Shown: positions 4,531-23,892, counted from the first letter of the stretch. The stretch: DNA of 24,993 nt from Octopus sinensis (GCF_006345805.1 NW_021836219.1:1-24993); one strand, 5' to 3'. Made by a program: numbers and translations. Notes: generated by a model not told the origin, from the letters alone.

Positions 4531-4700
4531 ACGTCGCCGGACGAAACACTTAACAGCCGGAACACTTAACAGCGTTTCGCCCGTCAATATGTTCTGAGTT
4601 CAAATTCCATCGAGTTCTATTTTGCCTTTTATCCTTTCTTGGTCGATAAAATAAGTTTCAGTGGAACACTGGGGTCGATGTATTCGACTTACCCCGAAAG
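4531..4700 (+). mobile_element. SINE family D copy with internal 12-bp duplication in the head
   Basis: aacacttaacag occurs twice, followed by gttctgagttcaaattcc...gtcgataaaataag...ctggggtcgatgtattcgactta. Confidence 0.75.
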
Positions 4701-4774
4701 TGTTGAAAGAAACGCCACCAATAATTTTATTCGACGCGTAAGCAATTCAGCCAATACTAATAGAGGTTGAAGTA

Positions 4775-4990
4775 GGCGAACTGGCAGAATCGTTTGCACG
4801 CCGGCGAAATGCTTAGCGGCATTTCGTCCGTCTTCACGTTCTGAGTTCAAATTCCAGTGAGGACGAATTCGCCTTTTATCCTCTCGAGGTCGGTAAAACA
4901 GGTACCAGTTGAGTACTGGAGTCTATTACATCGACTCACCCCTTCCCCGAAATTGCTGGCTTTATTGCCAAAATTCGGAAACTGTATTAC
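4775..4990 (+). mobile_element. SINE family D copy, preceded by an inverted D head at 4726-4753
   Basis: ggcgaactggcagaatcgtttgcacgccggcgaaatgcttagcggcatttcgtccgtcttcacgttctgagttcaaattcc... Confidence 0.85.
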
Positions 4991-5410
4991 AAAGTGGTTG
5001 ATGGTCACTTAAAATGTTAAATGGTTTCACATAGAGATAAGCCATAATTGTTTTTACTTGTCTCTACCACAGCAAAGCTTTCCTCATCAATTTGACGACG
5101 CCGTTGTTCGATTTTTGCTGCGTAGCACATAACACAACATTCGCTCCTCCACTATGCGGTTTACAATATGACACCCAATCAAACAGGGCTGACATCAACG
5201 TAAACAAAAGCCTTCTGTTCGTGTCAAAGCGTAGTGGTATCATATGTGATGTTATGAATTGTTTAAATTCCTGGAATTTGTTCTGTTCTTTATTATCCCC
5301 ACTGAAATTTCTCTCACTCACGCTCTCCCTTTCTCTCACTCCTGCTCTACATCTCTCTCTCTCTTCTCTCTCTCTCTCTCTCTCTCTCTTTCTCTTTCTC
5401 TCCCCTATAG

Positions 5411-5528
5411 CATATTTGTCTTAATGGCTGAATGTGTAAAACGACAAAAGAAGTTGAGTAATCACCCAGAACTTGAAGATTCAGTTGGTGCCGAGGATGG
5501 AAAGGACAAGCGCAGAGGGACGATTAAA
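5411..5528 (+). CDS. Candidate internal coding exon, phase 2 to 0: (S)IFVLMAECVKRQKKLSNHPELEDSVGAEDGKDKRRGTIK
   Basis: Acceptor (CT)n...cccctatAG (5409-5410) with no other AG in 5235-5408. Perfect donor aaa|GTGAGT at 5529. The 118-nt exon is open in one frame. IFxxxxxxVxRQK recalls the C-terminal helix of IRS/DOK-type PTB domains (by eye). Confidence 0.55.
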
Positions 5529-5597
5529 GTGAGTCACGTGATTACACTTATTCTCTGTCGGTTTTAATTCGCCCGTTTGAAACACTAAGACCAAAAT

Positions 5598-5986
5598 GGA
5601 TGGAAGCACTCCGTCGGTTACGACGATGAGGGTTCCGGTTGATCCGAATCAACGGAATAGCCTGCTCGTGAAATTAACGTGTAAGTGGCTGAGCACTCCA
5701 CAGACACGTGTACCCTTAACGTAAGTTCTCGGGGATATTCAGCGTGACACAGAGAGTGACAAGGCCGGCCCTTTGAAATACAGGTACAACAGAAACAGGA
5801 AGTAAGAGTGAGAGAAAGTTGCGGTGAAAGAGTACAGCAGGCATCACCACCATCCCCTGCCGGAGCCTCGTGGAGCTTTAGGTGTTTTCGCGCAATAAAC
5901 ACTCACAATGCCCAGTCTGGGAGTCGAAACCGCGATCCTATGACCGCGAGTCCACTGCCCTAACCACTGGGCCATTGCGCCTCCAC
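5598..5986 (-). mobile_element. SINE family B, full length (about 390 bp), tRNA-derived; possibly one of the described octopus OK/OR SINE families (unverified)
   Basis: Minus-strand head gtggaggcgcaatggcccagtggttagggcagtggactcgcggtcataggatcgcggtttcgactccc has A and B boxes. TSD taa(g/a)accaaaat at 5586-5597 and 5987-5998. Highly similar to 22152-22545. Confidence 0.9.
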
Positions 5987-6206
5987 TAAAACCAAAATAT
6001 ACTATGTTTCACACCAGAAATATATTTCTTGTAATAATTTAGTACGAGGCTATAGCTACGCAGTATTGTTAAACACTGGTTCAATACCATGCCGTGGTCT
6101 TTTGGAGGCTACCACAGACCGCACTATCATTTTCAATGTTACTTATATACCAAATTTTTACTGACTGCTAATGATTTCCTGAGGAGATGCCAAAAATCAA
6201 ATGCAT

Positions 6207-6688
6207 CTTTTCTTTTCTTTTTTTCTTTTCTTTATTGTTTTATTTGTTTCAATCATTTGACTGCGGCCATGCTGGAGCACCGCCTTTAGTCGAGTAAATC
6301 GACCCCAGGACTTATTCTTTGTAAACCTAGTACTTACTTATTCTATCGGTCTCTCTTGCCGAACCGCTAAGTGACAGGGACGTAAACGCACCAGCATCGT
6401 TTGTCATGCGATGTTGGGGAGACAAACACAGACACATAAGCAAATACATACACACACTCACACACACACACATACACACACACACACACCACACACACAC
6501 ACACACACATACACACACTCACATACACACACACATACACACACTCACATACACACACACATACATATATACGACGGTATTCTTTCAGTTTCCGCCAACC
6601 AAATCCACTCACAAGGCTTTGGTCGACCCTAGGCTATAGTAGAAGACACTTGCCCAAGGTACCACGCAGCGAGACTGAACCCGGAACC
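6207..6688 (-). mobile_element. SINE family A lacking its own 5' end (starts just before the B box), with internal (CA)n expansion at about 6424-6570
   Basis: Co-linear with 24257-24670 up to ccggaacc (6688), then switches to D-head sequence. Confidence 0.9.
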
Positions 6689-21350: not shown

Positions 21351-21548
21351 ATGTTATCATTACTGTTTTCTCCCGAGGCGGCCCAGATCCAGAAGGCATA
21401 TTATCAAAGGCGCTTCAGTCGTGACAACCTTACTTTTGTTTCCCTTTTTTTTTTCCGAATCTAAGGCTTGCAACACTTTTAGACATTTAGTTGTGTAGGA
21501 TGTGATATTGGCACTTGTTGGGTTGCCTCACACACTTCCTTACATAGT

Positions 21549-21959
21549 TGTAGAAAGGAAAATAGCGGGAACAAGAATCTCCGAACAAATGACAATAATG
21601 ATTTATTTCGCCGAAATAAGCATTTTCATCTCTGGACATCGGTAGCCTGGACGCCGGGGTGGAAGCAGCAGGGTTCGTAGTTAGGCACAAACTCTCAAAC
21701 TCACAAACTCACAGGCTCGCAACGTCGCTCGCCGCCAGAATGCCAGCTCGACGGAGCTGGTCTCAGTCGCATCCTGTCTGGTCAGAAGCCGGGGGCACGA
21801 AGAGAGAGAATAGCGATCAAACCTAGCTGCTGCTGCTGATGATGATGATGACTGCGCATGCGCATTGGGGGACTTCCGGCAGACCTTCCGGAAGACTGAT
21901 ACTTGCGCATGCGCAGATGAAAAATCCCAAAATGGCGTCTGGAACCTGGAGTCACTACA
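21549..21959 (-). mobile_element. Probable solo LTR (411 bp)
   Basis: Termini TGTAG...CTACA. On the minus strand, promoter motifs come first and AATAAA (21607-21602) sits about 55 bp before the CA end. It interrupts family E. The TSD is imperfect (atagt/gttgt, 3/5). Confidence 0.6.
21853..21937. promoter_or_regulatory. Cluster of NRF1-type TGCGCATGCGCA x2, ETS/GABP CCGGAAG sites and a YY1-type CAAAATGGCG motif
   Basis: TGCGCATGCGCA at 21853-21864 and 21904-21915; ACTTCCGG 21872-21879; palindromic CTTCCGGAAG 21885-21894; CAAAATGGCG 21928-21937. Confidence 0.7.
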
Positions 21960-22151
21960 GTTGTAATTCGCAGGAGATTTGGCTGCTATTTCTTGCAGAT
22001 TGTAGGACAGCGCGGTGGCTCTTCGGCGACTCGTTCTTTATATTTTACGAAGGCAGAGTGTGATTCGAGGGGAAATCGGCTCTTGTGTGTGGTGGTAGCT
22101 GTAGCCACCATCATTCAGCGGTCTCCTACGCTTGTTTGATCGACTTCGTTT

Positions 22152-22545
22152 GGAAGCACTCCGTCGGTTACGACGACGAGGGTTCCGGTTGATCCGAATC
22201 AACGGAACAGCCTGCTCGTGAAATTAACGTGTAAGTGGCTGAGCACTCCACAGACACGTGTACCCTTAACGTAGTTCTCGGGGATATTCAGCGTGACACA
22301 GAGAGTGACAAGGCCGGCCCCTTTGAAATACAGGTACAACAGAAACAGGAAGTGAGAGTGAGAGAAAGTTGTGGTGAAAGAGTACAGCAGGGATCACCAC
22401 CATCCCCTGCCGGAGCCTCGTGGGGCTTTAGGTGTTTTCGGTGTTTTCGCTCAATAAACACTCACAACGCCCGGTCTGGGAATCGAAACCGCGATCCTAC
22501 GACCGCGAGTCCGCTGCCCTAACCACTGGGCCATTGCGCCTCCAC
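22152..22545 (-). mobile_element. SINE family B, full length, with perfect 14-bp TSD
   Basis: GATCGACTTCGTTT at 22138-22151 and 22546-22559. Internal 9-bp duplication ggtgttttc at about 22430-22449. Confidence 0.95.
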
Positions 22546-22769
22546 GATCGACTTCGTTTATTTATTCATTGAGAAGTTTTCATCTTCTCGGTGTATTTAC
22601 GTTGACGTCCTGCGGCTTACAATCAACGTCACTCTTTCTAGTAACCAAACCTGTTCGATATCGATTCTGTTAGGTCTAGGTAACTTTAGTTTAAGCACGT
22701 AAATCAGATTTTAAAGGATAATAATAAAGTAAATAGTAATTTAGGTAAATTCATTCACTTTTTTTTATC

Positions 22770-23162
22770 TTTATTTTTTATCTTTTCCTTTCTTTTCTCA
22801 TTAGATTGCGGCCATGCTGGGGCACCGCCCTGAAGGATTTAATCGATCGAATCAACTCACTCCAGTACTTGTTTTAAATCTAGTACCTATTCTATCGATC
22901 TTATGCCATCTTTTGCCAAACCTCTAGGTCTGATAAGCGATGAATGGAGATGCAACACAAAGATGTACACACACACACACAAATATATATATATACATAT
23001 ATACGACGGGCTTCTTTTCAGTTTCCGTCCACAAAATCCACTCACAAGGCTTTGGTCGGCCCGAGGCTATAATAGAAGACACTTGCCCAAGGTGTTAAGC
23101 AGTGGAGCTGAACCCGGAGCCATGTTGTTTGTAAGCAAGTTACTTACCACACAGCCACTCCT
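22770..23162 (-). mobile_element. SINE family A copy with rearranged or shortened 3' half
   Basis: Head ...ttacttaccacacagccactcc and body cagtttccgtccacaaaatccactcacaaggctttggtcggcccgaggctata match family A. Confidence 0.85.
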
Positions 23163-23694
23163 TTGTGCAATAAAATTTGATAATGGAACTCTAGACAACC
23201 CTTTTACTAAATTATCAGCATCTGTTCTTATATACTTAAATATCATAAAATATTTATAATAGGAGAGTCTCTTACAATTACTGTGATGCAGCAGTAAATT
23301 ACATCACTGATGCAATCGCTATGTAATTACATGTCGGCCCTAGACGTTCGAACCTCTTTTTCTCGTTTAATCACGAGGAAGGGACATTGGCTATGATATT
23401 TTACACTGACTCCATTAGCAGCGGAAAGGAGTGAAAAAAAGAATCTTCAAATCGGATACTTGGTGCAAATGCTTGTAATGGAGTGCACATCGCTAGAGTC
23501 ACTCAAAGACGAAGTGCTGGTGTTAATAAGGACGCGTTGATTAAGTTTACCTCTTAAGTAGGTTAGGCCGGGATTTGAACTCACAACGAAAAAAGACTCT
23601 GACGAAATGCCAATTTACCACATAACTCAAGTCCCTGAATGCAAACTACATGAAACTGTGCTCTCATCAATTTGGTTTCAAATTTTGGCAAAGG

Positions 23695-23892
23695 CCAGCA
23701 ATTTCGGGTGAGGGTAGTAGTAAGTCGATTACACTAACCCCAGTGTCCAACTCATCCTTATATTATCGACCTCAAAAGGATGACAGGCTAAGTGGACCTC
23801 GGCGATATTTGCACCCAGAACATAAAGACGGACGAAATGCCTTTAGACGGACGAAATGCCTGGCATGCTAGCGATCGTGCTAGCTCGCTGCC
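23695..23892 (-). mobile_element. SINE family D copy with a 17-bp duplication in the head hairpin
   Basis: agacggacgaaatgcct at 23826-23842 and 23845-23861. Central domain ttatcgacctcaaaaggatgac. Confidence 0.75.

Follow-up and report, generated by a model that had tools for sequence, protein, structure and literature searches.

A hairpin in the head of an octopus SINE as a plausible, structure-driven site of recurrent rearrangement

The window analysed here is the whole of a 24,993 nucleotide stretch of Octopus sinensis DNA (GCF_006345805.1, NW_021836219.1:1-24993). It is AT-rich, with a GC content that ranges from 0.29 to 0.47 across it, and is dense in microsatellites and short interspersed repeats. 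The subject is one of these repeats, a short interspersed element (SINE) here called SINE D, and in particular a hairpin in its head at which a first-pass annotation had claimed a recurrent rearrangement hotspot with four independently broken copies. That the hairpin is a hotspot, structure-driven and of a known kind, is plausible. No Pfam domain was found in the 4,310 amino acids of non-repeat open reading frame segments from the window, and so no gene and no long interspersed element (LINE) is recognisable in it. Three of its repeat families, D and those called A and R3 below, are represented by similar pieces in O. vulgaris transcripts. The sample used for that comparison, taken from the text supplement of PMC9115989, comprises 400 kb in which SINE copies are very scarce. 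A large part of octopus genomes consists of SINEs, and brain transcripts are enriched in them (PMC9115989).

SINE D is a tRNA-derived SINE family of octopus. It is dispersed and multi-copy: searching the window with an nhmmer profile made from five good copies gave about 11 pieces in the 25 kb. (ATT)n tails follow two of the copies (D1 and D4), and D-like units are present in the O. vulgaris transcripts, one of them with an (ATT)n flank. Positions 8-87 of the D consensus form a tRNA-like unit in ARAGORN at a relaxed threshold, at which the D5 copy gives none; ARAGORN at its default settings and Rfam find no tRNA in the window. A box A-like motif, TGGCAGAATCG at D 8-18, has 9 of 11 matches to TRGCNNAGTGG, and a box B-like motif, GAGTTCAAATTCC at about D 72-84, resembles GGTTCGANNCC, both compared by eye with the box consensus. 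The copies are old, being 11-34% diverged from the window consensus.

D1 is full-length and on the plus strand (4065..4274; nhmmer model 1-208, E 3.5e-66). Its hairpin, at 4096-4117, has one mismatch, and its (ATT)n tail was placed at 4274-4529 by a tandem-repeat scan. Directly after an (ATT)n array comes D2 (4531..4712, plus strand), a 5′-truncated copy delimited by exact repeats and alignments, and then D3 (4775..4985, plus strand), which is full-length, was found by nhmmer and has a perfect hairpin at 4805-4826 with a fold of -20.5 kcal/mol. On the 5′ side of D1 there is an inverted fragment of a D head (3999-4043, minus strand, model 7-51; nhmmer E 1.9e-4, with alignment) whose end is the 3′ base of the hairpin and whose spacer to D1, CCAATATTAATAGTGG, is near-palindromic. 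An inverted head fragment 5′ of D3 (about 4713-4756) resembles that of D1 and also ends at the 3′ base of the hairpin. The two arrangements, 3999-4066 and 4713-4775, each comprising inverted head (model about 8-55), CCAATATTAATAGTGG and about 8 nt, are homologous with 83% identity, though D1 and D3 differ in the type of their 3′ tail despite this common layout. The layout points to a D subfamily whose 5′ end is a head-to-head inverted repeat, possibly formed when two nascent cDNAs paired at the palindrome. Derivation of D1 and D3 by a simple 710-bp tandem duplication was considered and rejected, as their tails differ and D2 lacks a counterpart in the second unit.

Further along on the plus strand are D9 (8550..8730), D4 (15084..15275) and the adjoining pair D5 (18436..18663) and D6 (18664..18765). 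D9 is an old diverged copy, 66% identical to the consensus (nhmmer E 7.4e-17), in which 4 bp are missing at the stem's 5′ base and the hairpin is lost (fold -0.9 kcal/mol). D4 has its hairpin at 15108-15129 with three mismatches and has lost internal sequence near model 157-170; a tandem-repeat scan puts its (ATT)n tail at 15298-15367. D5, with its hairpin at 18467-18488, is complete, because its terminal sequence, ...GTAGTAAAGAAATA, is homologous to the tail of the D1/D4 type. D6 is partial (model 44 to about 158). On the minus strand lie D8 (12704..12755), a body fragment (model 100-151) with both breakpoints outside the hairpin, and D7 (23673..23892), delimited by exact repeats, in which folding reveals no remaining hairpin. 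In a tRNA-like piece, D10 (23567..23612, minus strand), likeness to D is confined to the stretch between right arm and box B inclusive (model 43-84; nhmmer E 4.4e-4). ARAGORN at its relaxed setting gives a tRNA-like unit there, and D10 probably heads a different though related SINE family and is not a broken D. The wider unit in which it lies just downstream of D7 (23567-23640, minus strand, GTTATGTGGTAAATTGGCATTTCGTCAG...GAGTTCAAATCCCGGC) combines a box A region like that of the A head with a D-like stretch from right arm through box B, and could belong to a fourth, intermediate family as its head.

Some side observations concern the ends of D. The motif TATTAATATTGG, present upstream of the D-type head of the chimeric SINE A1 described below (6736-6760, minus strand), recurs in the D1 spacer (4044-4056), and weaker ATTAAT..GG-like strings stand 9-21 nt upstream of D5 and D7. 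The true 5′ end of D may be about 25 nt upstream of the tRNA-like start or, alternatively, there may be a preference for AT-rich insertion sites. In O. vulgaris the transcript comp3721_c0_seq1 (PMC9115989 supplement) contains one D-like unit that is circularly permuted, so that the tail runs straight into a new head; this is either a tandem D-D or an assembly cycle through the repeat.

The hairpin is a family feature, as had been claimed. The motif CGAAATGC-N6-GCATTTCG has four matches in the window at up to three mismatches (starting at 4096, at 4805, which is perfect, and at 15108 and 18467) against 0.08 expected. Its stem, unusually long at 10-13 bp, lies between the box A-like and box B-like motifs, and corresponds in position to the anticodon arm of the tRNA-like fold that ARAGORN gives at the relaxed setting. 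The best copy, with a 13-bp stem, folds at -20.5 kcal/mol as RNA (z -5.6) and at -12.3 as DNA (z -5.3), and no shuffled sequence folds as well. D5 gives -16.0 kcal/mol as RNA (z -3.15) and -5.6 as DNA (z -1.02), D2 with its duplication removed gives -12.0 kcal/mol (z -3.29) and -7.2 (z -2.66) respectively, and D4 gives -11.2 kcal/mol as RNA (z -2.81). There is a single double change in the D2 stem, from T:A to C:G.

The junction that links SINE D with another family is in A1 (6226..6735, minus strand). There positions 1-46 of a D head (6687-6735; nhmmer model 3-46) are joined to the body of SINE A (6226-6686), from A position about 49 on. Fusion of D to A at cttagc|ggt (6688) had been claimed and is found on comparing A1 with the three other A copies: the reference A2, with a tRNA-Ser-like head (20933..21336, plus strand; alignment and ARAGORN), and A3 (24256-24670) and A4 (22955-23162), both on the minus strand and with heads as in A2. 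The D-type head is present in only one of the four copies by alignment, and the proposition that all A copies have a D head was rejected, the heads of A2, A3 and A4 being different. The junction, GCTTAGCGG|TTCCGGG at 6680-6695 (junction string GCTTAGCGGTTCCGGG), is inside a GGT microhomology common to A (ATGGTTCC) and D (GCGGTATT). The two parts run collinearly in one orientation, and no tail intervenes. The A head has an anticodon-like hairpin of its own, and on the A side the crossover is 2-3 nt 3′ of it. The best direct repeat flanking A1 is 7 nt and was equalled or exceeded in 166 of 200 shuffles. A separate observation is that CTTAGCGGTTC, which equals the junction of D loop and A body in A1, is also present in normal A tails (21198-21208, 6362-6372 and 24381-24391) as ...CACTTAGCGGTTCGGC...; this may be coincidence or a second homology able to guide switching.

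The families share more than this junction. Model positions 114-171 of D match the 3′ part of A at 6285-6341, 21221-21282 and 22832-22900 (nhmmer), the common block being GATA.AATAAGTAC...CTGGGGTCGAT..TCGACT. A and D probably have one LINE partner, as this block suggests, and since they have the 3′ module in common the same LINE machinery could hold both RNAs. The A body contains CACCTTGGGCAAGTGTCTTCTAC..., which we take to resemble the MIR core, or CORE domain. Octopus OR2 has been named as a CORE-SINE (PMC4758252), and is listed as SINE/tRNA-Core in the RepeatMasker table for O. vulgaris transcripts (PMC9115989).

Two copies have been altered by short duplications built from the hairpin itself, and both changes are as had been described. 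In D2 the 12-mer AACACTTAACAG occurs twice, at 4545-4556 and 4561-4572. The insertion is the 16-mer CCGGAACACTTAACAG (4557-4572), which repeats the left arm and loop and ends exactly at the boundary between loop and right arm. In D7, on the minus strand, the left arm is replaced by a copy of the right: the 15-mer GCATTTCGTCCGTCT occurs twice, at 23845-23859 and 23826-23840, with AAAG between, so that 15 nt of left arm and loop have become 19 nt, 15 of them copied directly and without error from the right arm and its flank. The repeats are 100% identical within both D2 and D7, while the copies that host them are 13% and 18%, respectively, off the window consensus. Were the duplications as old as the copies, such identity would have a P of about 0.03-0.08 even at 8-10% divergence per lineage, subject to the caveat that subfamily difference may account for part of that divergence. 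With repeats identical in diverged copies, the duplications in D2 and D7 are therefore probably later events at the DNA level, by slippage or templated repair at the inverted repeat, and not events of the time of insertion.

The remaining junction is the claimed restart of a second unit at |ggtatt, and it too is present. D6 begins with GGTATT at 18664, which is the first base of the right arm, and follows the 3′ end of D5 directly, without a tail. D5 and D6 are 89% identical, the closest pair of D copies in the window. The sequence upstream of D6 was considered as the head of another family; this was rejected, for it is the tail of D5 itself, homologous to that of D1 and D4.

Do breakpoints then cluster at the hairpin? 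All structural events in D pieces were counted, whether at the hairpin or elsewhere. Plotted along the D consensus, as had been proposed, and for the copies in the window, about 7 of about 19 events fall within model 28-55, which is 13% of the element (binomial P about 0.009); with stricter counts of events P is only 0.03-0.07. Three to four events are within a 4-nt interval at the boundary of loop and right arm (P 4e-4 to 5e-3, or about 0.02 allowing for the choice of interval). This boundary is common, within 1-3 nt, to the D2 insertion, the D7 replacement, the start of D6 and the A1 junction. The O. vulgaris sample has four D-like heads in its 400 kb, and two of the four have indels in the loop or right arm (comp2884 and comp3428). 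Outside the hairpin there are at least 12 structural events, including the 5′ end and a 5-bp deletion of D2, the deletion in D4, an 11-bp deletion and the 3′ end of D6, both ends of D8, and an 8-bp deletion in D9. The breakpoint cluster at the hairpin is suggestive. As to the claimed hotspot, all four features on which it was founded are real and there are additional junctions at the hairpin, but the clustering goes no further than suggestion and its P values are post hoc.

Several points weigh against the hairpin as the cause. The zone for which P values were calculated was picked after the data had been seen and the sample is small; about 11 D pieces from a single 25-kb window are too few to prove a hotspot. 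D1 and D3 with their inverted fragments are non-independent, D10 may be of another family, and some of the 'events' may be inherited subfamily features. Local alignments tend to end where the best-conserved block has its edge, and that block starts with the right arm. Among nine sequences, covariation in the stem was without excess over controls and so lends no support to selection on it. Stalling at a stem is expected at its 3′ base, whereas in D6 and A1 the break is at that end of the right arm which adjoins the loop, and D6 is without a 3′ end of its own, which is unusual for target-primed reverse transcription.

The explanation favoured here, tentatively and at a probability of roughly 0.45, is that two known processes have acted on a strong hairpin: template switching by reverse transcriptase, and later slippage or repair of DNA. 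The hairpin would be a structure-driven weak point for copying enzymes and not a recognition site. During retrotransposition a LINE reverse transcriptase may pause or be displaced at the stem-loop and then resume on another SINE RNA at a microhomology of a few bases, giving a chimera of D head and A body. D5|D6 would probably have formed when the enzyme left one D RNA at its loop and resumed at the 3′ end of a second. Once a copy has been inserted, its inverted repeat in DNA could give rise to replication slippage, or to break repair with templated insertion, and so to the duplications of D2 and D7. A filter may also operate. Because the stretch between the promoter boxes would tolerate changes of length, chimeras and broken copies should stay recognisable and, if source genes, transcribable. 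The hairpin, the sequences at the junctions, their microhomology and the clustering are observed; which enzyme acted, and when, we infer. Judged by its structure, A1 is well explained by template switching: it is collinear, lacks an internal tail and has microhomology, with the donor breakpoint at the foot of a hairpin and the acceptor in a loop. Switching can also explain D5|D6, where close relatives abut without a tail. It is the accepted route to module exchange and chimeric SINEs (PMC4758252). Template jumps by reverse transcriptase, which the first-pass annotation had put forward as one of its two causes, are accordingly reasonable for A1, with its GGT microhomology and collinearity, and for D5|D6, but D2 and D7 look like events at the DNA level.

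Alternatively, the junctions could be the inherited module boundaries of amplified subfamilies, each of which arose once, the hairpin being just where homologous and non-homologous blocks meet within a network of related tRNA-derived SINEs whose shared blocks are the 3′ module and the stretch from right arm through box B. In molluscs, SINEs exchange modules as a rule (PMC4758252). The 3′ module common to A and D agrees with such a network, as do D10, which is like D only at model 43-84 and is itself tRNA-like, the same inverted-head architecture of D1 and D3 with their unlike tails, and an A-like head in O. vulgaris (contig comp2884) with AAAATGCTTGC, intermediate between the anticodon arms of A and D. 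Inheritance of this kind is nevertheless unlikely, though it has to be taken seriously: among A copies in the window the chimeric head is confined to one of four, the junction strings of D2, D7 and A1 are not repeated in the window or in the 400 kb of O. vulgaris transcripts with their few SINE copies, and the identical repeats of D2 and D7 argue for recent, copy-specific events. Less probable still is that the cluster is due to chance and ascertainment, with old SINEs that are rich in indels being noticed where they happen to change near a conspicuous palindrome, and with alignments that start at the conserved right-arm block. The dozen or more events elsewhere in D, the weaker P values on stricter counting, and the failure to find target site duplications (TSDs) or covariation are all in keeping with chance. 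It would have to account, however, for four events on one boundary within 1-3 nt, for which the narrow-interval P values are low even after correction for the choice of interval, and in D2 and D7 the rearrangements were templated by arms of the hairpin itself and are not random indels.

Two further explanations place a cut at the hairpin. End-to-end jumping is known for the reverse transcriptases of non-LTR elements such as R2, and SINE RNA might be cut in its anticodon-like loop, in the manner of tRNA halves, with such jumping joining the halves to other SINE RNAs. A single site between loop and right arm fits the start of D6, the end of the D part of A1 and the common boundary; allowing for the GG(T) microhomology, the first two can be the same phosphodiester bond. 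The position of the hairpin in the tRNA-like fold is that of the anticodon arm, and no tail separates the D5 3′ end from D6, which is what jumping to the 3′ end of an RNA should give. If true, the loop would be an inherent site of recombination from which new families of chimeric SINEs arise in cephalopods. It is a long shot: only two events bear on it, D2 and D7 are left unexplained, and D6 has no 3′ end. More doubtful still is nicking of the hairpin in genomic D copies by a Tx1-like LINE endonuclease, with SINEs and LINEs inserting preferentially in D heads. The first-pass annotation had proposed a sequence-specific endonuclease of this clade, and a SINE that targets its own family. The junctions do have one boundary in common, and D copies are locally clustered, with D1, D2 and D3 within 1 kb and D5 and D6 adjacent. 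In the window, though, no D is split by an insert with both halves kept: there is no D right half beyond the A1 tail and no D left half upstream of D5 or of the partner of D6. The TSD-like signatures that might have marked insertion were looked for at every D and A copy, intact A2 and A3 included, and no direct repeat beyond chance was found, the copies being old. No LINE is recognisable in the window, and five hairpins are intact and uninterrupted. The clustering of D follows microsatellite tails, D2 coming after (ATT)85 and D4 between (ATAG)61 and (ATT)23, and is more simply derived from insertion beside such tails. The data from the window already refute, if weakly, the endonuclease idea, and self-targeting fares no better. 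Template switching together with later DNA-level slippage or repair remains the explanation preferred.

The other features of the window can be dealt with briefly. A third SINE family, R3, has minus-strand copies at 5601-5986, 22151-22545 and 13365-13529 and a tRNA-like head, GGCGCAATGGCCCAGTGGTTAGGG. Two of the copies, 94% identical, are of much more recent date than those of D and A; the 3′ end of R3 is found also in the O. vulgaris transcript comp2612. A tandem duplication of about 166 bp with 94.6% identity (3402-3566 and 3574-3739) is apparently unrelated to the SINEs. The segments 12201-12378 and 12977-13143 are an inverted repeat pair of about 178 bp with 89% identity, about 600 bp apart. 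Two long degenerate arrays of the (CACCAC)n type (10425-11110 and 11451-11819), with about 340 bp between them, have strong strand asymmetry with GC skew as low as -0.57. Exact-pattern scans gave no match in metagenome contigs or viral contigs and one chance match in prokaryote genome contigs, in a goat-rumen metagenome-assembled genome (L001). The open −1 frame of SINE D, used in a protein word search, yielded no candidate, and the D and A sequence strings are not in the main texts of papers.

Accounts of how SINE families are born by module swapping do not usually go beyond the general notion of 'template switching'. If a sharp peak of breakpoints at one hairpin loop proves true genome-wide, it would give a concrete structural cause for the sites at which SINE modules recombine, and D would be a natural system for pausing and jumping by LINE reverse transcriptase. 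By itself the window is a plausible example of known processes and calls for no new mechanism.

Of the known systems, the tRNA-derived octopus SINEs OK, OR1 and OR2, reportedly described by Ohshima and Okada in 1994, are close by description: D and A also have tRNA-derived heads and an octopus host, and A has a CORE-type body. Specifically, the central block of SINE A appears CORE-like, as in OR2. The target-specific non-LTR elements Tx1 and R2 bear only a superficial likeness, namely a recurrent junction sequence; unlike with them, an insert inside the conserved target with both halves kept was looked for at D and not found. Slippage at palindromes and quasi-palindromes, with templated-insertion mutagenesis at DNA hairpins, is reported from the work of Ripley and of Lovett. 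In D2 and D7, likewise, the arms of an inverted repeat supplied the changed sequence, whose limits coincide with the edges of stem and loop. Classical quasi-palindrome mutations make the arms more complementary, whereas the change in D7 turns the inverted repeat into a direct one and destroys the hairpin.

For A1 the counterparts are chimeras made during reverse transcription. The L1-mediated chimeric retrogenes U6-L1 and U6-mRNA (Buzdin 2003, cited in PMC4758252) resemble it in that a switch between RNAs, one of them a small structured pol III transcript, gives a bipartite copy. The U6 chimeras include the small RNA in full, at their 5′ end, and have TSDs on both sides, while A1 has only the 5′ 46 nt of the D head and its TSDs are undetectable. 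Closer are the chimeric, or 'jigsaw', SINEs and the exchange of CORE-SINE heads by switching of LINE reverse transcriptase, as outlined in PMC4758252 (Kramerov & Vassetzky 2011; Nishihara 2006; Akasaki 2010). Like these, A1 has a 5′ module from one SINE and body plus tail from another, collinear, in one orientation and with a microhomology joint. Unlike them, it is joined not at the border of head and body but within the tRNA-like head, at the hairpin loop that separates the box A-like motif from the box B-like one.

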